Below are positions 3,552 through 27,570 of a stretch of DNA of 64,000 bases, one piece after another. Origin of the DNA: Selaginella moellendorffii (lineage: Eukaryota > Plantae > Lycopodiophyta); the NCBI RefSeq assembly GCF_000143415.4, contig NW_003314371.1:203380-267379 (forward strand). The letters are read 5' to 3'. How positions within the stretch are numbered: position 1 is the first letter of the stretch; each line of letters begins with the position of its first letter. A program made the position numbers and the translations under genes. The notes beneath the pieces were generated by a model. It saw only the letters and a list, made by a program, of their open reading frames with translations, searched no databases and had not been told where the DNA came from.

Positions 3552-3651
3552 NNNNNNNNNNNNNNNNNNNNNNNNNNNNNNNNNNNNNNNNNNNNNNNNN
3601 NNNNNNNNNNNNNNNNNNNNNNNNNNNNNNNNNNNNNNNNNNNNNNNNNNN
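3552..3651. other. Assembly gap (100 N), probably collapsed extensin repeats
   Basis: Run of exactly 100 Ns between the extensin repeats and their upstream region. Confidence 0.98.
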
Positions 3652-12203: not shown

Positions 12204-12850
12204 GGTATATCCACGAAACTGTGATCGCATCTCCACCGTCCGTCTGCATCATCCCAGCCGTCGAAGCTAGGTCCAAACTTAGCCCGAGAGTCTATTTTTA
12301 GTATCTAGCTCTTACAAAAGCACAGTGCATCATCTAGGGTTTTCTCGTGAGGATGAGGGGCGGCGCTCCGACGCCCTAGACAGGGCCAGGGTTTTGTAAG
12401 CCCGGGGGCCCTATCGCTCAGTTGCGGGAGCGATCCATTTGTTGTGCGTCACCGGGATTGAAGGCTTTGGCATAGGGATGTCACAGTACTGTGGTACAGA
12501 GAAGCACATCGCACTGGAGGTGATTTCTTTATCACCTGCGGCTCCATGTACTTCTCCGTGCCACAGTACTGGGAACGAAAGAGGTACGATCGTATTGCTT
12601 TTCTTTTATTTCCAGGTATTGGAGACTGGCAGCCAAGATTTGGCCTTGTGTCTATGCAAACGCAAACAAGCTCCAAAGCCAAAGCTCTCAAGCTCCAGGG
12701 CGGTTCCAAAGCTCGAGCGAGGCATCAAAGTTCCATCAAAGGCTCCAAAGCTCAAACTCAAGAGTTTGGGGTGTTTTTGTTTTGTGTGCTATGTAATTTT
12801 TTGTCAGCTATGAAGATTTAGCACAAGGAACTATGGCTTTGCTGATACCA
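12204..12850 (+). repeat. Hairpin-containing repeat module, copy 1
   Basis: Shares the leader catcatcccagccgtcgaagctaggtccaaa, a telo-box-like ctagggttt, the hairpin at 12484-12571 and a short gtacg...ttccag intron-like segment with the other copies. Confidence 0.85.
12484..12571 (+). ncRNA. Candidate pre-miRNA-like/hpRNA stem-loop (copy 1)
   Basis: 5' arm cagtactgtggtacagagaagcacat...aggtgat pairs with 3' arm atcacct...atgtacttctccgtgccacagtactg. Expression is unknown. Confidence 0.45.
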
Positions 12851-12856
12851 GGCGAG

Positions 12857-14850
12857 ATTATTCCCTGCTTGCCCTGTTGTTGTGCGAGTTGTTTAGAGTC
12901 GATTGCTTGGTCCACAAGCAAGTAGCGCTCGATTCTCCTTTGGTTGAGATACCAAGCTTGTCTGAGACGAAAGTCGTGGCGATAGTCTCCGCTTCCACAT
13001 CTCGGCGCCGTACGCGTAGTAACCTCTCCTTGTAACTCATCTACGGACGCCCCACTGGGTCGGTTCTGTGAATGATTTCTTCGATTGATTCGCAGGCCCG
13101 TGTCTTGGTAGAAACGGTAGAGTGTATCGATGTGAATGGTGTTCCTTCTGCTCTGACGAGGTCGGGTGGGAAATAGAGCAGCTGGTCTCGCATTGCTGGT
13201 GCCTGGATTCGCATGTCCAGGTAGTGGTTCTCCTCGTCTTGTTTGATGACTACGGCCCCCAGATCACGTAGATGACTATGCCTCCATTTCTCGTCCCATG
13301 GATGTTGCTTTCCAGTTCCATGCTGTGCTGACGTCAGGGATCCGGCTCTGCTGGTCTTCCCAGCGATGATGTCGAAATGCTCTTATTCAGTCCGCAGTCG
13401 TGTGAGAAGCCGCCGATGTTCATCACCATCACCATCTCCACCATCACCGTCACCGTCACTTGCAATGTGTCCGAGTGCTGTTGCTTGTGCTGTCTGTTTC
13501 CTTTGCATTTTGTTGTTGTGGCGTTATAGGCAGTATCTTGTAAAGATCTTTGGGCTTGGTATCTTGTAAAGATTATGGCGAATTTTAAATCCTGTAGGTA
13601 GTGCTCTTGATATCTTAGTTCTCGGTGTGGTTCCCTGCAGCCAGTGCTGCTGCATGGCGTTTTTTCTGGGCTCCCACTTGGGCTTGGAGCGTGACCAATC
13701 ATTGCTGAGCGTGTTGGAGCGTTTGCGGTTCAGTGTATGCATTGTGTGCCATGGACACAAGTGTGTTGCCCGCCTCCGCTTCTTGCTGCTGGCCTGATGT
13801 AAGATGCATCATTCATCGCCCAACCGCGACCAGCTTAGATGGCCGCCGATCGGGAAGGTTGGCTTGATCACCTTTTTGGACATTTCCTTGCGTTTGCGGT
13901 TTAGTTGGACTCTTACGCAACGAGGTCCTTTTGCCCTTTGCTGTTGTCTTTCGGTGGCGGCTGTTTCACGACTGCGGGTGTAACTTGTTGATTGCCTAGG
14001 ATCAGACGCGGTGCCTTGTTTGTCGTTTTTGCTCAGCTTCCTCGGCAACGTCAGTGTGGAGCCTGACGAGTGCATCCTCTAAAATCTTCTACGCCTCATT
14101 CATAGCTGTTCTCGCACTGACTCGCTTGTGGTGCCGTCCCCTCTAGCTGCCAGGTATTTGGAAAGCTACTCTTGAGGCTCATTGCTGTCCGTGGACGTTT
14201 CTGTCGTCTGTTTGTTTCTGTTGTTGTATGGAGGTGTTTTCGGGTGGTGGTGGCGTGCTCTCTTTGCTTCCTCAATGTTCCAGAAGCGCCGAAATCCTTG
14301 GTGACGTTCAGGCGCTCTGGAATGTTGACGTACTAGGGCGCGTACGTGTGTTGTCCCATGATGATCCTCGCTGAGTTCTTTTCTCGACTGGAACCTCCAC
14401 GGTGACCACTCCTGATTTCACGTTGGTGAAGATGATGTGTCCCAGTGCCCGGAGGGCCTCCTTCGTGGTCTCTCTCTTGGCCTGGAGTCCACCGGGCTAA
14501 AGGCATGTTTCAAGCATCACCTGGCTGGTTTCCCTCTCTGGGCCGTTCTCCGCGAACCCGTTGTGGTGTTTGAAGGTAACCAGGAATTCGCTGTTGATCG
14601 CCGTGCTGTGAATTCAGAGCTTCGCGATCTGGTGCCTCTCGTACGTGTAATGGCCAAACCAGGGGTTCACTTCCTCTCGGTTGAAGCGTGGGTGGTCAAT
14701 TCACACACTGCATCAGGTCTCCATATCTTCTATCATTCTGCAATAGTTTCTGACTGCCTTGGTTTTGTGATGCTGAGTGTAGTTTTAGAATCAGCACTGG
14801 GTCTTGGGATCCAACAGTGGGGATCTTGGGCTCGATGTTGGTGGTGACCA
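12857..14850 (-). mobile_element. Decayed L1-like LINE fragment (ORF1-like region plus start of an APE endonuclease-like ORF2)
   Basis: ORF1-like: FLVTF...EALRALGHIIF..VVTVEVPV...YVNIPERL. APE-like: GGIVIYV..VIKQDEENHYLDMRI..LYFPP..RRIERYLL. Stops and frameshifts present; inverted homolog at 26090-27570. Confidence 0.6.
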
Positions 14851-14912
14851 ACATCGAATAGTTTGAATAGTGTGTGACCGGCGTTTTCTTTGCTTTGAAT
14901 ATACTACATGTT

Positions 14913-15425
14913 AGGTGTATCCGCTAAATTGTGATCGCGTCTCCTAGCTCGAGGGTCTTGCTCTTAGCATTTTCTCCAGAGAGTAGGTTTTCATGCTCCA
15001 GAATTGGGGCGGCGGGGATGGGCGAGGATCCATTTGAGGGTCATTGTCTCTTCCTTGAGATGCACAATAGGGAGATGTCACAGCACTGTGGTCCAGAGAA
15101 GCACATCGCACTGGAGGTGATTTTCATCACCTGCGGCTCCATGTACTTCTTAATACTGGAAACGAAAAAGGTACGAACTTTTCTTTTTTTCCCAGGTATT
15201 GGAGGGACTGGCAGCCAAGATTTGGATGATGCGCCGTGGAGATGGCTGAAAAAATTATGTACTTTTTGTAGGATTCCCAAATTCTAGGTCCAGCTTGATC
15301 GAGCGCTTCCCTGGGCTCAAATGTTCAGCTATGAAGATCTAGCACAGGCCACCTGCTTGCCCGCGAAATTTTTATCCAAGCCACAATTCAGCAAATTTAA
15401 ACGCTGGACTCAGTTTAGCTAGTTA
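14913..15425 (+). repeat. Hairpin repeat module, copy 2 (leader and 3' arm partly deleted)
   Basis: Hairpin at 15081-15158 with about 10 nt missing from the 3' arm; same downstream gtacg...cccag|gtattggagggactggcagccaagattt segment. Confidence 0.82.
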
Positions 15426-15454
15426 AATTGGAAGCGCACAGGTCCAAAGCTTCT

Positions 15455-16335
15455 TCATTGTCCGACTGCTTCTGTTTCTTCGCTTTGCTCCGATTCTGCC
15501 TTTCTGTTCTTGTGTGGAGGTTGTTTCTGTGACGGGTGAGATGGTGGTGGTGGCATGCTCTCTTTGGTTGCGGGTGCTGCCGCGATGTTCCAGAAGCGCC
15601 AATTAAAGGTGAAATCCTTGGTGACGTTCAGGCGCTCTGGAATGTTGAGCTTCGCTGAGTTCTTTGTCGGCTGTCTTCTCGCCATATTCTTGGAGGTATG
15701 CCAGGTGATAGTGAAACACGTTGGGGTGTTTGGAGGTAACCAGGAATTCGCTGTTGATCGCCATGCTGTGAATTCAGAACTTCGCGATCGGCCAAACCAG
15801 GGATTCACTTCCTCTCGGTTGAACAATTCACAACACGCAATGCATATGGCAGGGGCTCTTGTCATTCGGCAATAATCTCTGGCCGGTGGGTCGTAGTGTT
15901 CAGCGCGATCCCTTGACGTTCTCGGGCTCCTGGTCTCCGAGCGCATGCCTACTCAAGCGTGGTTGTTCTTTGGCCATGTCGCTGCGCGGTGGTGCTGCAT
16001 GCATGGGTGCCGGGTGCCGGGTGGAGTCCATTCTGTTGCGGCGTGTAATGGCCATGTTGACGAGCGCACTGTGGTTGGCATTGTGATTGGCGTGGAGCTG
16101 TGCATGCCTGCTGAGTGGTCGTCTCTCTCATACCTCTCAGCCCTGGGTCTTCCAACACTGGGGATCTTGGGCTCGATGTTGGTGTCGTGGCTGCGCCAGT
16201 ACTGCTGCGTTGGCGTGCTTCTGAACTTTTTTGCCGACAATGCCTTTGCTTGAGGACGTGTTCGTGACGATCACTGGAGGCGTTATTGGTTGAGTTATGA
16301 TCCCTGCCTGGCAGCTGCCGTGACCGGGAGGACAA
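15455..16335 (-). mobile_element. Second decayed L1-like LINE ORF1 fragment
   Basis: Shares FNREEVNPWFG and NIPERLNVTKDF with 12857-14850; homologous in reverse to 25440-25950. Confidence 0.6.
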
Positions 16336-16981
16336 CAACACAGGGTGCACGTCCAGACTTGGGTGTAGTGAACATTGTGGAGGAGGAAATTCATGACTCA
16401 ATTCTGGGCCTTACTATGTGTTGAGAAAGATAAACGTGTCACATGCATGAAAGTCAGTTCCAAAAAATACAGTGGTGCCAAGCATAACAGGATATAAGAC
16501 TTGGCAGGACAACATGATCATCCAAACATTTTGGTTGTGTGCAGATGACATTCAACATTGTTGGGACCAATTGGGCGATCTTAAAGGGTTCAGTTGTGCT
16601 CCATTACAATGGCTAGTTGCTGAAAGTATATTGATAACTTTGGCAGAGCCACACCAGCTCTAGAAGAAACTCCACTGGAGGATCCAATCCCATCAAAACC
16701 TATTCAGGTGCACCAAGAAATAATGGACAAAGAAATCTTAACACCAACTCCAACATCAACTGCTTCAGGTAAATGATCTTTGAAAAAAATTAATATCTCT
16801 TTAACATTTGCCTCTCCTGCTAGCGGGGTGGTCGGTGGAGCTAGGCTTCAACCTTTGGGACCTTCATTTCTTGAGCTTGGGCTGAAACACTCCGTGAATG
16901 TGGAAAAACTTACAGCTCGGGCATGCCGTCCACATTGGTGGTTTTGTTTTTGGGAGACCCCTCGAATATACGAGAATATTA

Positions 16982-17612
16982 GGTATATCCGTTAAATTGT
17001 GATCACCGTCCGTCTACATCATCCCAGCCGTCGAAGCTAGGTCCAAAGTTAGCTCGAGGGTCTATTTTTAGTATTTAGCTCTTACAAAAGCGCAGTGTAT
17101 CGCCTAGGGTTTTCTCCAGGGAGTAGGTTTTCATTTGGGGGTTCGATCGGCCCTATCTTTTGCTCACTTGCGATGAATGGGTGTTGAGGGTCACTGTCTC
17201 TTCCTTGAGATCCACAAGGAGATGTCACAATACGTCACAGTACTGTGGTCCAGAGAAGCACATCGCACTGGAGGTGATTTCCATCACCTGTGGCTCCATG
17301 TACTTCTCTGTTCCACAGTACTGGAAACGAAAAGGTACGTATTGCTTTTTCTTTTTCTTTTTTTTTTCCAGGTATTGGAGGGAGTGGCAGCCAAGATTTG
17401 GATGATGCGTTAAGAAACTTCTCATCCGTGAAGATGAGCTATCCAAGTTGTCCAGGTTTTTGTTTTGTGTCACATTTGGATTTGGATTCCCAAATTCCAG
17501 CTCCGGCTGGATCGAGCGCTTGCCCAGGCTCAAATCTATGAAGATCTAGCGAACGGGTATCATACCAGGCTTGGATCGCTGGATCAAATTTCGGGAGCCC
17601 TTGGGCAAGCAG
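16982..17612 (+). repeat. Hairpin repeat module, copy 3
   Basis: Hairpin at 17238-17323; leader nearly identical to copy 1; the terminal ~45 bp (17570-17612) is inverted relative to copies 2 and 4. Confidence 0.85.
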
Positions 17613-18639
17613 GCATTCTGGTTTTAATTTATTTAATATAAATACAATTGCATTGCCTTTGAAGATGACCTAAACTTGAAAGCAAACGGGCATTTAAATT
17701 TGCTCCACATTTTTATGGAAATGAATTGTACTTAGTGATAGCGAGATGATTGCCTCCCACCGTCACCACTGCCACCATCCTCACCACCACCACCACAGGA
17801 GACGGGGACAGGGACAAAGAATGGCAAAGAATAGCACAATCATATAACTTGAATTGGGATCGACTCTTCTTCATGTTGATCATCGGTAGCTGCTGCTGCT
17901 GCTGCTGCTTGGATTTCACGAGACATCACCAGCATCATAGCTGGATTGGGATTATCAAGTCATCATCAGCATCATAACTGGATTGGGATCATCAACTCTT
18001 CATCGCCAACATAGTAGGAACGTTTTATGATATTAAAAGAGCTCAATCGCCAACATAGTAGGAAATAATAATCTCAGTATAGGAATGCTCACTAAAACGG
18101 CGTTGGGTGAGATCCGCCTCTTGCATCTCCGCTCGGATGGTTGTGCCAATGGAGGCTGTGTCTCACTTGGTTAATTCCATACAAAGTAGCATCCCCTTCC
18201 ATAGACAGTTTACGGCCAGTTTAGCTCGTTGCCCTCCAAAACTTACGGAGCCAATCTTTAAACTGTGCAAGTCAAAAGAGTGAAAAGATTTCAGGAGAAA
18301 AGAGAACTTTCTTTCGAGCGTTACACAGGAATTGTGAGTTCACCTCTTTTTTCTCCGGATCTTGAGCCGTCAATCTCCATGGCCGTTGCACGCATGCATA
18401 CTTCAAGAATCCACGAAAAAGGCTATGAACAGCTCGTAACAAAAGGTGGCGGGGCTACATGTGAGCGTCGGCTTGCTTGCTGGGCAGTGGTAATACCAAG
18501 ACGCGAAACGCGGCAGGAGATCGGCTCCTGTGCTTGCTGGTGGGGTGGCGTTTATAAGAGTTGGCAAGCAAAAACAAAGTCATAGATCTCTCGATCTCGC
18601 AAAAGAAGGTTGGCCGGATCCATACATCATCAATTTATC

Positions 18640-19101
18640 ATGTCGTCGACGAGTCCCAGTTATCTGATGATCCTGCTGCTTCTCACCGCTACTCTTGTCT
18701 GTGGTGATGAGTTCTCAGATCCGCCACCTTCTTCTTCTTTGCATTCTCCTCGAAACAGTAGAAAGCTTTCGCCATTGTTGCTAGGCTTGATGAGAGGCCG
18801 AGGAGCAGTGGGATCGAGTGTGGAGTGCTCCCAGGGTGAATCGGGTGGAACCTTTTGCCGTGCTCAGGCATTGTTCGCGGCAAGCGGATCGAGTGCGTCG
18901 TGTTGCAATCGGCGGTGTGTGGACGTTGGCGTGGATCTGTTCCACTGCGGCATTTGCAACCGGCGGTGCCAAGACGGGGAGTCGTGCTGCAGGGGATTTT
19001 GCGTAGATCTCAACACCAACAGGAAGAACTGTGGCGAGTGCGGTTTCAAGTGTCCCAGAGACGTGCAGTGCCAGTTTGGGATCTGTGGCTATGCTGGATG
19101 A
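18640..19101 (+). CDS. STIG1-domain (GRI-like) secreted cysteine-rich protein
   Basis: Signal peptide YLMILLLLTATLVCG; C-terminal CCNRRCVD...HCGICNRRC...CCRGFCVDLNTNRKNCGECGFKC...CQFGICGYAG; TTATAA about 90 bp upstream. Confidence 0.92.
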   Translation: MSSTSPSYLMILLLLTATLVCGDEFSDPPPSSSLHSPRNSRKLSPLLLGLMRGRGAVGSSVECSQGESGGTFCRAQALFAASGSSASCCNRRCVDVGVDLFHCGICNRRCQDGESCCRGFCVDLNTNRKNCGECGFKCPRDVQCQFGICGYAG

Positions 19102-19305
19102 TCAAGGAAGAACATCTCTACTCGTTTTGCATCATTCTTTAGTTCTTGATTATGAGATCCTTCATCGATTTTATTCATTTTCTTCATTGTCTGAGTTTGT
19201 TACCATGAGAAGAGGAAAATTCATGTATTTGCTTGATTCATTCATTCATTTATCCAAGAGCCAAGTGTTTATCTTCCGGGTCTTGAGAGTTAATAGTTTG
19301 TGTCG

Positions 19306-20928
19306 TCAATCTAGCCTCAGAACAAGACCACCACCACCTTCCGCCTTGCCTCCTCCTCCTCCTCCCTCTTGCGATCCGCCTTGCGAGCTCTTCCGGCTTC
19401 CAGACGGCTGCTGCGACGCCGAGTTTCCACCGCCGCCCCCCTGCTGAGGCTGCTGAGCCCGAGGAGGCGGCGATTTCGGGCGGAGGGCCTCTATCTCGTT
19501 CGTGGTCCCCAAGAGATGCGGAGCTTCTGGCTGAGGATTGCCTCGTCCTCCCTGCCAGACATTGCCTTCCGAGTCTGCAAAGTATCTTGTATACGTCTGA
19601 AACATCGCAAACAAACAAACTTTGTCGTAGAAAAAGAGCAAGCTTTCCAAAAAGAAAAAGAGCTTCCAGACTTACCTGGCTGCTGAAGTTGGAGGACGTG
19701 AGACTCTTCCCGATGGTTACCCAGCCAGCACGGATGTTATGGTCTTCGCCGAATAGCTCCAGCCGCCGCCGGCCCAGCGCAAAATGCTCTATGATGTGGT
19801 AGAGCTCTTCTGGTTTAGCGACGGATCCTACAGACAAGCAGCCATTAGCTTGAGAGAGTTTTGAAGTTGAGAGACAACTCACCGAACGGAGGCTCCTCCG
19901 AGATAATCACGTCGGTGTCAACGTTGGCATGAATGATATGTCCATCACTGCTTCTTCTCACGGTTCCTTTTATACCCATCAAGCAGTGTTCCTGACAAAC
20001 CGAAGCGTGGGTTAGGCCACTACTAGCAAGCTCCGAGTGTCACGTACCTTTGAGTGCTGGAACAAGGTGTTGGAATCGTGTCTTAGTGGCGGAGATGGAT
20101 TTTGTTTGTTCGTCTTCACCCAGCAGATATCTTCACACCTTCTGAATCCCCACTATGGAATCCGTTAACGAGAAGAAAAAACGTATTTTGTTTCACGTAC
20201 CTTCTTCAAGCACTGCCGACCTTGATCGAGCCCTTCCGCATCTCCCACCCATAGAAAAATAAACGAGGGTGTATCAGCGATAGCCTGCGATCCACTGCCG
20301 TGAAAATCAAGCTCAAGAAGAACAAAGACAGAGAATGAGAAAGAAGAAAGAGCTCGTACCTCGATTCGAAGGTTGAGAATCTCCTCAAACGTCCACCACT
20401 CGAGGGAATCCTCCACGCCGGGAGCTCGTCTCACATACTCCTCCCAGGGAGGATCCACCAGGATGACATCAAACTTGGTGCCGAAAAGCTCTGGACCCAA
20501 AGCCTGCGTCTTCAAGTCACACTGCAAGTACATTGGCGGCGTTGCGCGCTCGGCGATGAGCGAATCCTTCCTCGTGACGAGCTCCTTGAGCTTGGGATAC
20601 TCCTCGAACCGGTCAGCCAGATCCACGTCCCGGATGAAATTGTGAGGACGCAATCCAGTGTCGACAAAGTGCTGCGAGTAATCGTTCTGCTCGCCCCGCG
20701 ACGGAGCTCGACCCAGGCCTCCTCTCCCTGGAACAATCCCCGCCGGGAACATCCCAGCGCCACAGCCCCAGCCCATGGACGCCGCGAAATGCGAGGAATA
20801 CGCGGCCCCTGGCGGGGGAAGCACACCTGATCGATCGAGCCAGAAAATCTCATGGAATCAGAGGGAATCAAGCGATTGCTACCTGTTCCTCGCCCCCTGC
20901 TCGTGGATCCCGCGCGCTGTGGCTGCAT
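19306..20928 (-). CDS. MTB: m6A mRNA methyltransferase non-catalytic subunit MTB (METTL14 ortholog, MT-A70 family)
   Basis: [78 protein letters not shown]. Exon 1 MQPQRAG... splices in frame. Confidence 0.93.
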
Positions 20929-21242
20929 TGCTTGCTAGAGCCCTAAACCCTAGTAGAGGAGATGCCATTGTCAAGCATATTCACGCCCACACGCCAATCC
21001 AGGGGAAAGAGAAATGTTTGTGGCGCATCGGACGGTACGTACAGACGTGGCAAAACGAATCTTCAGTGGACTGGACACATTCGCCCACTTGGCAAGATTG
21101 CGACCGTGGATCACTCCGCGTGGACGGGCCGATTTACTGGCCGCCATAGCTAAGAAGCCCTTGATTGACCCTTCTCTCCCCTTTTGGTTGTCTCAAAGAG
21201 AGGCGCAAATGGTGAAGTCTGTGGGGAAGAAATCCAGGGTGA

Positions 21243-23427
<2,185 letters not shown>

Positions 23428-23759
23428 AACTCCATTGCTTCCAAGGACGCGAGGAACGGTCACGATTTCCCATCAAGAACGAGCATTGCTATATTCAACG
23501 AGGAAGAAAAACACGGTATACAAAAACCGATCACTCACCTGGAAGATCGAGAGCTGGCGGTACGCCATCTCTTCCCCGATTTGACATTGTTTCGATTCAT
23601 ACAAGACCGGGACGCATAAATTTAAGTGTAAATTTTAAATGTGTGAATATTTAACCTAAATTATAATAATTTAAAACTTATAGCCCTAAATTATACTAAT
23701 TTTTAAATTACAAAATCATTAATGCAATTGTAGGTATGTTATTTCCCATTCACATCATT

Positions 23760-24390
23760 GGTAGAATGATTGTTCGAAAATCTCCAGCAGCAGGGAAGGG
23801 CACCTGGGGTGCAGATCAAGCTGCAGTTCGTTTTGAAGCTGCGAGGCGAAGGAACTCCATGGCATCGTGAGATACTACCATATTCATCGTGTAGATGGAA
23901 CATGAGTTTGGCAACAACACCCCAAACTGCATCATAGGGGACGAATACACTTGCGAAGTCGTCAAGAAGCTGGACTTCGTTGCAAAATTAGACCACAGAC
24001 AGCGCTACCCAGGCACGATCACGAAATGGCCAACCACACCACCACCCGTCTACTGGCTCAAATGCGACGATACAGAACACGGGATGGGCACGCCAACCCA
24101 CATGGGAGGCTATACAACATCGCAAACTATGTCAGACGAAGGAATCAGGAAATGGTGGAACCAGCTGCGCAGAACTCCAAAAGATGGTGACCAACTCCAC
24201 TGACAATTCCAGAAGGTGGCATGATCCACACCAAGCGTCCAAGAAGAAGAGTGCCTGTCCTCATTGACGAAGTAGAGACGAACTCAGGAATTTGCCATGC
24301 GACATCCCACTGACCTATGAGAAACAAATTCAATACCGCCGGTGGCTCCAGATGTGTACGGCTACTCCTCCAGATGCTGAACACGCAATG
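23760..24390 (+). mobile_element. Probable LINE ORF2 C-terminal relic (post-RT / zinc-finger region)
   Basis: Fragments IKLQFVLKLRGEGTPWHREIL, IRKWWNQLRRTPK and ACPH*RSRDE..LPC resemble the LINE post-RT and CCHC region. Heavily decayed. Confidence 0.35.
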
Positions 24391-24569
24391 AGAAGATTTT
24401 TTGAGGATGCATTCGTCACCTTTTGTTCTTAACGTGTGCATGCGTGCAACGGCCGGCTCAAGATCCAAAGGAAAAAGAGGTGAACACACAATCTACATCG
24501 AAAGCAAACTTTCCTCCTCAAATCTTTTATGACTCTTGATTATGACTCTTGACTTAGAGAGACCTGATG

Positions 24570-25180
24570 TTTAAATTTGAAGTCTAGCGTTTAAATTTTT
24601 TGTTGAAATGAATTGTGGCTTGGATCAAAATTTTGCGAGCCCTTGGGCAAGCAGATGGCCTGTGCTAGATCTTGGGCAAGCGCTCGATCAAGAATTTGGG
24701 AATCCTACAAGAAAGTTTTCAGCCATTCCCAGAACAAGAACAACCTTAGAAGACATCTCCACGGATGAGAAGTTTCTTACCATGCCAGTTCCTGCAATAC
24801 CTGGACAAAATGAAAAAGCAATACGTACTTATTTCGTTTCCAGTACTGTGGAACAGCGAAGTACATGGAGCCGCAGGTGATGGAAGAAATCACCTCCAGT
24901 GCGATGTGCTTCTCTGTACCACAGTACTGTGATGCCAAAGTCTTCCTTGTGCATCTCAAGGAAGAGACTCAAATGGATCCTCGCCCATCGTCGCCCACCT
25001 CGCCAGATAGGGCGGATCGAAGCCCAATTCTCTCTGGAGAAAACCCTAGACAATGCACTGTTGCTTTAGTAAGAGCTAAATACTAAAAATAGACCCTCGG
25101 GCTAAGTTTGGACCTAGCTTCGACGGCTGGGATGATGTAGACGGACGGTGGAGATGCGATCACAATTTAGTGGATATATG
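24570..25180 (-). repeat. Hairpin repeat module, copy 4 (inverted orientation)
   Basis: Reverse complement of copies 1-3; hairpin at 24841-24929, plus a small adjacent hairpin tcttccttg-tgcatct-caaggaaga. Confidence 0.85.
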
Positions 25181-25199
25181 CTCAAATATTCTAGTATAT

Positions 25200-27570
25200 T
25201 CGAGGAGTTAAAAACAAAACCTGGACGAAAATGTCGGCAGGCAAAGGCACGCTCAAGCTGTAAGTTTTTCCACATTCACGGAGTGTCCGCTATGGTGTTT
25301 CAGCAAGAAATGAAGGTCCCACCCCTCGCAGCAGTCTTCCTCAACATGCCCAAAGCACCGCACCCACAGCTGCAACAATCCACCAATGACCAATCCCTCG
25401 CCAAGCGCACTTCAAGCGGGAGAGATCAGCGTCAAACAGAGACGAGGAGTCACGGCAACCATCACGCGGGGATCGTCACTCAACCGATAACTCCTCCAGC
25501 GATCGTCGTCACCGTGTCATTCAACTGGGATCTCAACCAAGGAACACGTCCTCAAGGAAAAAAACGCCATTGCCGGCAGCAACGGTCACACGAGAAACTA
25601 CTATTCAAACATGGCAATGGCTGATGCATAGCACAACACCGCCACGACACTGGCCAACACCAACATTAAGCCCAAGATCCCCACTGTTGGATCCCAAGAC
25701 CCAGTGCTGACCCTAAAACTACGGGCGAGGAGAGGATTTCGGACCAGAGACGACCACTCAAGCATCACAATGTCAACCGCCAGCGCGCCCGTCAACATGG
25801 CCATTACGCCGTAACAGAATGGACTCCACGGCGCAGCACCCCCGCCCAGCGACATGGCTAGAGGACAACCTAAGGGGAGAACAGCCGCATGCGCTCGGAG
25901 ACCAGGAGCCCCAGAACGTCGAGGGATCACTGAACACTAAGACCCGATCTACCACCAACCAAGGACTATTGCAGAATGAGAGGAGCCCCTCCCATACAGA
26001 AATCACTTCCTGCGTGGTTACAACTTTACCAAGGGACCACATAAGAGCTCCATGTACTTTCAACTGCTGAAGTAACGGGTCTGGATATTGGAGACCTGAT
26101 GGAGTGTGTGAATTGACCACCCACGCTTCAACGGAGAGGAAGTGAACCTGGTTTGGCCGTTACATGTACGAGAGATCGCGAAGTTCTGAATTCACAGCAC
26201 GGCGAATTCCTGGTTACAACCGGCTATCTGGGGCGAGGGCATGTTTCACTATCGCCAGCATCACCTGGCTGATTTCCCTCTCTGGGCCGGTCTCTGCGAA
26301 CCCGGTGGACTCCAGGCCGAGAGAGAGACCACGAAGGAGGCCCTCCGGACACTGGGACGCATCATCTTCACCAACGTGAAATCAGTGGTCACCGTGGAGG
26401 TTCCAGTCGACAAAAAGAACTCAGCAAGGATCACCATGGGACAACACATGCACGCGCCCCAGTACGTCAACATTCCAGAGCGCCTGAACGTCACCAAGGA
26501 TTTCGGCGCTTCTGGAACATAGGCAGCAAAGAGAGCACGCCACCACCCGGCACAGAAAACACCTCCATACAACAACAGAAACAAACAGACGACAGAAACG
26601 TCCACGGACAGGAATGAGCCTCAAGACTAGCTTTCCAAATACCTGGCAGCTCGAGGGAACGGCACCACAAGCGAGTCAGTGCGAGAACAGCTATGAATGA
26701 GGACTAGAAGATTTTGGAGGATGCCGTCAAGCTCCACACTGACGCTGCCGATGAAGCTGGGCAAAAACGAGCAACAAACAAGGCACCGCGTCTGATCCTA
26801 GACAATCAACAAGTTACACCCGCAGTCGTGAAACAGCCGCCACCGAAAGACAACAGCAAAGGGCAAAAGGACAACCAGAAACGCAAGGAAATGTCCAAAA
26901 AGGTGATCAAGCCAATCTTCCCAACCCTGACCAACTTAGATCCGTGATCAGCACAGCCGTGGCGATGAATGATGCATCTTACATCAGGCCAGCAACAAGA
27001 AGCGGAGGCGGGCAACACACCAGTGTCCATGGCACACCACACATACACTCAACCCCAAGCAGGGTCCATCATGACGAAGTAACGCTCCAACACACTCAGC
27101 AATGATTGATCATGCTCCAAGCCCAAGTGCGAGCCCAGAAAAATTGCCACGCAACAGCACTGGCTGCAGGGAACCAGATCAAGAGCACTACAAGATTTAA
27201 AATCCACCATAATCTTTACAACAAGCTCAAAGATCTTTACGTACTCTACTTTTGTAGCTGATTTTGGACTGCCCTAACGCCACAACAACAAAATGCGAAG
27301 GAAACAGACAGCACAAGCCGGCACATTGCAGTGACGGTGACAGTGATGGTGGAGGCAGTAAAGGTGATGACATCGGCAGCTTCTCACACGACTGTGGACT
27401 GGGTTTAGCGGAATATGGTCATCGCACTAGCTGAAACATGCAGAGCCGATCCCTGAACCTCCCAAGCTTCAACACACACAGCACATCCATGGGATGAGAA
27501 AATGAAGACATAGTCATCTACATGATCTGGGGCTGTAGTCATTAAATAAGACGAAGAGAAGCACTAATTG
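25200..27570 (+). mobile_element. Decayed L1-like LINE 5' portion, ending abruptly at the AT-rich island
   Basis: Reverse-complement homology to 16960-16850, 16330-15890 and 14730-13230; contains EALRTLGRIIFTNVKSVVTVEVPVDKKNSARITMGQHMHAPQYVNIPERL. Confidence 0.62.

Follow-up and report, generated by a model that had tools for sequence, protein, structure and literature searches.

Three intact hairpins and one decayed copy lie within a 64-kb stretch of DNA (64,000 nucleotides (nt), hereafter the window) on scaffold GL377675.1 of the lycophyte Selaginella moellendorffii (assembly GCA_000143415.2). The intact hairpins are already catalogued microRNA (miRNA) genes of the S. moellendorffii family MIR1094, and the decayed copy is a dead member of the same family. 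Both arms of the hairpins are similar at the DNA level to one family of S. moellendorffii protein kinases, in opposite orientations, and it is very probable, judged from sequence comparison, that the hairpins originated from the activation segment of such a kinase. A function of miR1094 against the parental kinase family is a well-founded prediction, to which we give somewhat better than even chances. The account as a whole, which joins the MIR1094 genes, their origin from a kinase fragment and the predicted repression of the parental kinases, is considered likely.

The MIR1094 hairpins and their mature species

A first-pass annotation, made from the letters of the window alone, had described a pre-miRNA-like hairpin at four places, one of them damaged, and all four were recovered where it had put them. 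It did not recognise the hairpins as miRNAs that had been annotated before. The comparison of the whole window with Rfam 15 gave exactly three matches above the gathering score, all of them to RF03375 (MIR1094), whose gathering score is 80 bits. Copy 2 was found at a permissive threshold and by the Rfam rule (score of at least 80 bits) is not a member. The hairpins (with minimum free energy, MFE, where given) and the mature species are:

12478..12580, + strand: smo-MIR1094a hairpin, copy 1; RF03375 at 116.1 bits; MFE −54.6 kcal/mol, z −6.0
15075..15167, + strand: decayed MIR1094 copy 2; 69.1 bits, below the gathering score; z −1.9
17232..17332, + strand: smo-MIR1094b hairpin, copy 3; RF03375 at 116.2 bits; z −6.35
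24832..24935, − strand: third intact MIR1094 hairpin, copy 4, inverted; RF03375 at 123.6 bits; z −6.3
12549..12568, + strand: mature smo-miR1094a, TACTTCTCCGTGCCACAGTA, 3' arm of copy 1; exact match to You et al. 2017
17301..17321, + strand: mature smo-miR1094b, TACTTCTCTGTTCCACAGTAC, 3' arm of copy 3; exact match to You et al. 2017
24843..24863, − strand: predicted mature 3p species of copy 4, TACTTCGCTGTTCCACAGTAC, located by sequence

Copy 4 is presumably smo-MIR1094c, a name that is not verified. Windows around copies 1, 3 and 4 fold with an MFE of −54.6, −51.4 and −50.5 kcal/mol, and not one of 200 dinucleotide shuffles was as stable (0/200). The weak fold of copy 2 (−30.7 kcal/mol) is due to the deletion of 8 nt of the 3' arm, by which the lower stem is destroyed; in the Rfam alignment this deletion falls in the mature-miRNA arm, and the mature-like 3p sequence is gone. 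The miRNA/miRNA* duplex of copy 1 has two mismatches and one G:U pair in a short stem of about 43 base pairs (bp). The folds thus have few mismatches and no large bulges in the duplex, as is expected of plant MIRNA genes (Meyers et al. 2008, cited in PMC5569507).

The sequences of miR1094a and miR1094b each occur exactly once within the window. PMC5569507 credits Axtell, Snyder and Bartel (2007) with the first report of them, and in the supplement of You et al. (2017; PMC5569507) smo-miR1094a has 1393 reads and smo-miR1094b 309. In the same work miR1094 is seen in one species column of about 25, the named entries being those of S. moellendorffii (You et al. 2017). The lineage-specific small-RNA locus suggested by the first-pass annotation is therefore MIR1094, with published species of 20–21 nt from the 3' arm. 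This accumulating strand is antisense to the kinase mRNA.

Relation of the arms to a kinase family and predicted targets

The DNA comparison was made by blastn with the whole window and the allelic locus of the other haplotype as queries and the coding sequences (CDS) of four kinase genes as subjects. The 5' arms match the CDS in sense orientation at nt ~498–554 and the 3' arms in antisense orientation at nt 556–511. Identity is 76–88 % over 38–57 nt, with best E values of 4.7e-9 in the window and 1.2e-13 in the allelic copy. Outside the arms, the window and the allelic locus gave one stray match only (E 0.004). The similarity extends beyond the miRNA segment to the loop-proximal YMAPEV codons, so that both arms resemble one gene family in opposite orientations and beyond the mature region, as in an inverted duplication. 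Such an origin from a kinase activation segment had been proposed in the first-pass annotation, together with a blastn search of the arms against kinase CDS; the matches in four genes, with E values down to 1e-13, agree with it.

On the sense side the similarity extends past the stem for about 20 nt in the upstream direction (CAGGGAGATGTCA), followed by an 18-nt gap and then by the codons for I-G-D-F-G-I-A, of which a relic is left in copy 1:

12456..12475, + strand: relic of the kinase I-G-D-F-G-I-A codons, GATTGAAGGCTTTGGCATAG, just upstream of the stem; 16/20 identical, colinear with the CDS of kinase P0015

By tblastn, residues 157–186 of P0015 align to 12457–12528, and the relic of copy 1 has a shuffle p of 0.014. 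The unusually short distance between DFG and CGT, about which the first-pass annotation had been cautious, is explained by the 18-nt deletion in non-coding DNA. Beyond these limits, 5' of the DFG codons and 3' of the hairpin, no kinase homology was found by blastn, tblastn or shuffle comparisons.

At the protein level the 5' arms translate into QYCGTEKHIALEVI in copies 1 and 4, QYCGPEK in copy 3 and QHCGPEK in copy 2, and the reverse-complemented 3' arms into QYCGTEKYMEPQV(I/M), or QYCGTAKYMEPQVM in copy 4. The translations quoted in the first-pass annotation are correct, except that copies 2 and 3 have CGP in place of CGT in the 5' arm. Its DFG-like piece upstream of the stem stands in frame in copy 1 (EGFGIGMSQYCGT); in copy 4 a shift of one base separates the frame of EDFGI from that of QYCGT, and in copies 2 and 3 the piece is absent. 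A 20-nt site pattern occurs seven times in the window, always within the arms (0.02 expected), and 8 of 10 positions of an activation-segment consensus are reached by the arms alone, the real CIPK gene reaching 9/10. None of 30 window shuffles scored 8. Both counts indicate that the kinase resemblance of the arms is not due to chance. Searches of Pfam (E<=10) and of the PDB with phmmer gave no kinase match for the open reading frames (ORFs) of the arms, which are too short for these searches. The copies do not represent a kinase gene or pseudogene (PF00069), as about 30 codons are similar and the frames are broken between copies. The ORFs at the copies vary from 63 to 137 amino acids (aa), with frameshifts from copy to copy and without a Pfam domain.

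A profile of the seven aligned arm peptides was searched against 1.84 billion protein cluster representatives and found seven proteins at E<=1e-3. Four of them are kinase-domain proteins with MSKYCGTEKYMAPEV or QQYCGTAKYMAPEV, all from S. moellendorffii (SELMODRAFT_416658, SELMODRAFT_413628, XP_024521750.1 and XP_024530416.1) and all with YCGT(E/A)KYMAPEV, which is the ancestor reconstructed in the first-pass annotation. The others are one gene model over the allelic hairpin and two unrelated proteins; one of these two was inspected and is a repeat protein. A family search starting from one kinase gave about ten S. moellendorffii members, named PEPKR2, CaMK type 1-like or AtPK1/6-like by NCBI, and one distant outsider with 42 % identity. 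The family consensus around the site is VIGDFGxATDxxxxMSQYCGTxKYMAPEV, in which the reconstructed ancestor is contained. Four genes were available at the DNA level, namely P0011 (on L003), P0015 (L004), P0017 (L005) and P0016 (L006); three of the four, P0011, P0015 and P0016, are intronless, the DNA translating directly into protein, which was not so for the P0017 model. P0015 is located on GL377596.1 and bears the NCBI name PEPKR2. The kinases are arranged in small tandem clusters (L003 5–2429; L006 1–6912), with a pair of neighbouring genes on GL377852.1 and a group of three or four on GL377567.1, which includes one gene fused or adjacent to PPR repeats.

Two other ideas about the parent were given up. 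The neighbouring CIPK, which the first-pass annotation had already found not to be a close nucleotide match, is indeed not the parent; it has generic kinase-motif identity without an extended DNA match. The idea that the arms keep an exon-intron border (the CIPK exon ends in ...APE, followed by GT) was dropped, the parental kinases being intronless and reading GAG GTG ATG at this place.

The hairpin would thus derive from a fragment of about 90 nt of an intronless CaMK/PEPKR2-like kinase gene, comprising the codons IGDFG...MS(K/Q)YCGTEKYMAPEVM. The last ~42 nt of this fragment (YCGTEKYMAPEVM) would have been copied in inverted orientation, giving a sense 5' arm and an antisense 3' arm. This route would be the inverted duplication by which new plant MIRNA genes arise in the model of Allen et al. 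(2004). Processing would be carried out by DCL1, probably from loop to base because of the upper stem of about 18 bp and the small loop.

Candidate target sites were searched on both strands of about 43 kb of kinase loci with the standard penalties for plants; a mismatch was counted as 1 and a G:U pair as 0.5, both doubled at positions 2–13. One complementary site was found in each kinase gene (4/4) with best-isoform penalties of 2–3.5, and no further miR1094 site occurs in these ~43 kb:

P0015: best isoforms a and b; one mismatch each; penalty 2
P0017: best isoform b; two G:U wobbles only; penalty 2
P0011: best isoform that of copy 4; two mismatches; penalty 3
P0016: best isoform b; one mismatch and two G:U wobbles; penalty 3.5

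The capacity to silence a kinase family, which the first-pass annotation had ascribed to the locus, is therefore retained as a prediction. Between the three mature isoforms the differences lie at positions 7, 9 and 12. Position 7 faces the second base of the codon (Glu/Ala/Gly) by which the kinase subfamilies are distinguished, and positions 9 and 12 face the third codon positions of Thr and Gly. The copy 4 isoform has G7, a match to the Ala codon in the CGTAKY kinases, yet this base is mismatched in its own stem. According to the proposed mechanism, miR1094 would direct cleavage or repression of the AGO1 type against the parental kinases at their YCGT(E/A/G)KY codons, and the differences at positions 7, 9 and 12 would spread coverage across the kinase subfamilies.

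Array, transcripts and the other haplotype

The hairpins belong to duplicated units, with copies 1–3 in tandem and copy 4 inverted, and the neighbours of the array are LIM-bind, STIG1, MT-A70 and CIPK genes. No annotated protein gene lies over the hairpins of the window in GCA_000143415.2. An inverted duplication (12206–14850 versus 25062–27566, pieces 77–99 % identical) flanks STIG1, MT-A70 and CIPK; it holds a 198-aa gene without Pfam domains (26241–27434) and a degraded counterpart, and the ORFs of the duplicated flanks gave no match in Pfam. An assembly gap of 100 N is located at 3552–3651 of the window. Among the paralogues the hairpin is 92–97 % identical, whereas the 170 nt on either side are 48–77 % identical with many gaps, a contrast that points to constraint on the hairpin.

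On the other haplotype (GL377576.1, locus L002) there are three hairpins in tandem, each with a score that exceeds the gathering score. All three isoforms are present on both haplotypes; the third is encoded by copy 4 in the window (24843–24863, − strand) and, on the other haplotype, by the middle copy of the tandem (L002 2975–3075). The array structure therefore differs between the haplotypes and the isoform set is the same, the middle copy being dead in the window. We regard it as possible, though rather doubtful, that co-diversification with the kinase subfamilies is the reason why both haplotypes retain the three isoforms; single-base changes of the antisense arm would then have retargeted individual copies at a cost in hairpin pairing. 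If so, MIR1094 would be a small self-contained system in which a young miRNA family keeps pace with the gene family from which it arose and, as a lycophyte case, the clean example of birth by inverted duplication from the oldest lineage. At L002 5001–5478 (GL377576.1) NCBI has placed the model of a 146-aa hypothetical protein, P0001, on top of an allelic MIR1094 hairpin. The model is probably an annotation artefact, being without a Pfam domain and in a frame that is not conserved among the copies.

For transcript evidence, a 5.6-kb stretch was compared with contigs of three RNA-like runs from three studies. These cover patches of it only and a run guessed to be DNA covers all of it, a difference which supports the guess that the three runs are RNA. 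Two transcripts were observed:

12336..12808, + strand: unspliced transcript over copy 1, resembling a primary miRNA (pri-miRNA); 475-nt contig of run X1 with 0 differences
14986..15382, + strand: transcript of decayed copy 2; 101-nt GT..AG intron at ~15169–15269

The patch over copy 1 is also present in runs X6 and X13, and another run extends it to ~13217. The joint of copy 2 (15168>15270) occurs in all three RNA-like runs, each from a different study, and adapter sequence abuts position 14986. Copy 2, which is unable to yield a mature miRNA, is still transcribed and spliced, and its intron starts a few bases past the hairpin. A conserved block, TAGGGTTTTCTCCAGAGAGTAGG with a telobox-like TAGGGTTT, is located at 12335–12350, 14965–14990, 17105–17125 and 25035–25055 (− strand). 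RNA contigs start at this block, at 12336/12341 and 14984/14986, and it may mark the core promoter or the start site of the pri-miRNAs.

Alternative explanations and comparison with known systems

Several points weigh against the account given here. The precision of the miRNA/miRNA* duplex rests on the published annotation, which gives counts of 3p species only. The match to RF03375 identifies the same loci, which the family presumably includes, and is no independent support. That runs X1, X6 and X13 are RNA is a guess, with which their patchy coverage agrees. The homology of the DFG relic is weakly significant per copy (p 0.014 to 0.6) and weaker or absent beyond copy 1. At the best site, in P0015, the single mismatch of miR1094a is at position 9, near the cleavage position. 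Furthermore, You et al. (2017; PMC5569507) have no entry for a predicted target of miR1094a; for miR1094b they list two targets without names, and a cleavage site from the degradome is given for neither.

The alternative that survives best accepts the kinase derivation and takes the hairpin as a transient, effectively neutral young miRNA without measurable kinase regulation. Many young plant miRNAs are functionless, the family is species-specific and already contains one decayed copy, and the published degradome-supported table is without predicted or validated cleavage. However, neutrality does not fit well with hairpins that are far more conserved among the paralogues than their flanks, with three isoforms kept on both haplotypes, with isoform differences lying exactly at target positions that are synonymous or distinguish subfamilies, and with the accumulation of just the antisense strand. 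We consider it improbable, while leaving it a real share of the odds. Much less remains for the idea that the loci are hairpin small interfering RNA (siRNA) loci or pseudogene fold-backs, imprecisely processed and misannotated as miRNAs. Their arms are long and nearly perfect like those of proto-miRNAs, but discrete, registry-identical species of 20 and 21 nt dominate (1393 and 309 reads) and the short stem of ~43 bp carries miRNA-like mismatches, so that this idea is very unlikely. Least probable, and in effect refuted by the profile search and blastn, is a coincidental kinase-like reading or a real protein-coding gene such as P0001: the Pfam and PDB searches without a kinase and the gene model on the other haplotype are outweighed by DNA E values down to 1e-13 in both orientations, profile E values of 2e-4 to 6e-4, a frame that is not kept, CGP in place of CGT and a kinase similarity limited to about 30 codons.

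The predicted regulation of the parental kinases by miR1094 is thus preferred. In the literature searched, which excluded the founding description of 2007, the kinase origin and the targets are apparently unreported, a statement that is provisional; the main texts there do not name miR1094, and Selaginella was not among the species covered by Nozawa et al. (2012). The hairpins are not new and the mechanism is textbook knowledge, so the value of the result is incremental; new are the derivation from a kinase and the candidate targets. In this way miR1094, which has long been in the registries without a named target in the accessible literature, receives a concrete parent and a candidate target family. 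The birth of MIRNA genes by inverted duplication, best documented in Arabidopsis, would be extended to a lycophyte, with a kinase activation loop as donor, a motif which would let one small-RNA family cover a whole group of paralogues.

In comparison with the registered smo-MIR1094 (RF03375; miRBase smo-miR1094a/b), the loci are the same and the mature sequences identical; the decayed fourth copy at 15075–15167 falls below the gathering score of the registry family. Arabidopsis MIR161 and MIR163 arose by inverted duplication of target genes (Allen et al. 2004, as cited in PMC3318440). Like these, the miR1094 hairpins have a sense and an antisense arm whose homology to the target family reaches past the miRNA/miRNA* segment, and miR1094 is young, lineage-specific and directed, by prediction, against its parent family. 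Unlike MIR161 and MIR163, with PPR or SAMT parents, miR1094 is a lycophyte miRNA with a putative CaMK/PEPKR2-like kinase parent, its antisense segment comprises only ~42 nt, and the array has diversified into three isoforms. A further parallel is the miR482/2118 superfamily of 22 nt, which targets P-loop codons of NBS-LRR genes. In contrast to it, miR1094 has 20–21 nt and a candidate target family of about ten genes, found in S. moellendorffii only in the searches run. As in miR482/2118, however, the predicted miR1094 site lies in the codons of a conserved motif, so that many paralogues could be covered, and the variable positions of the miRNA are placed opposite wobble positions.

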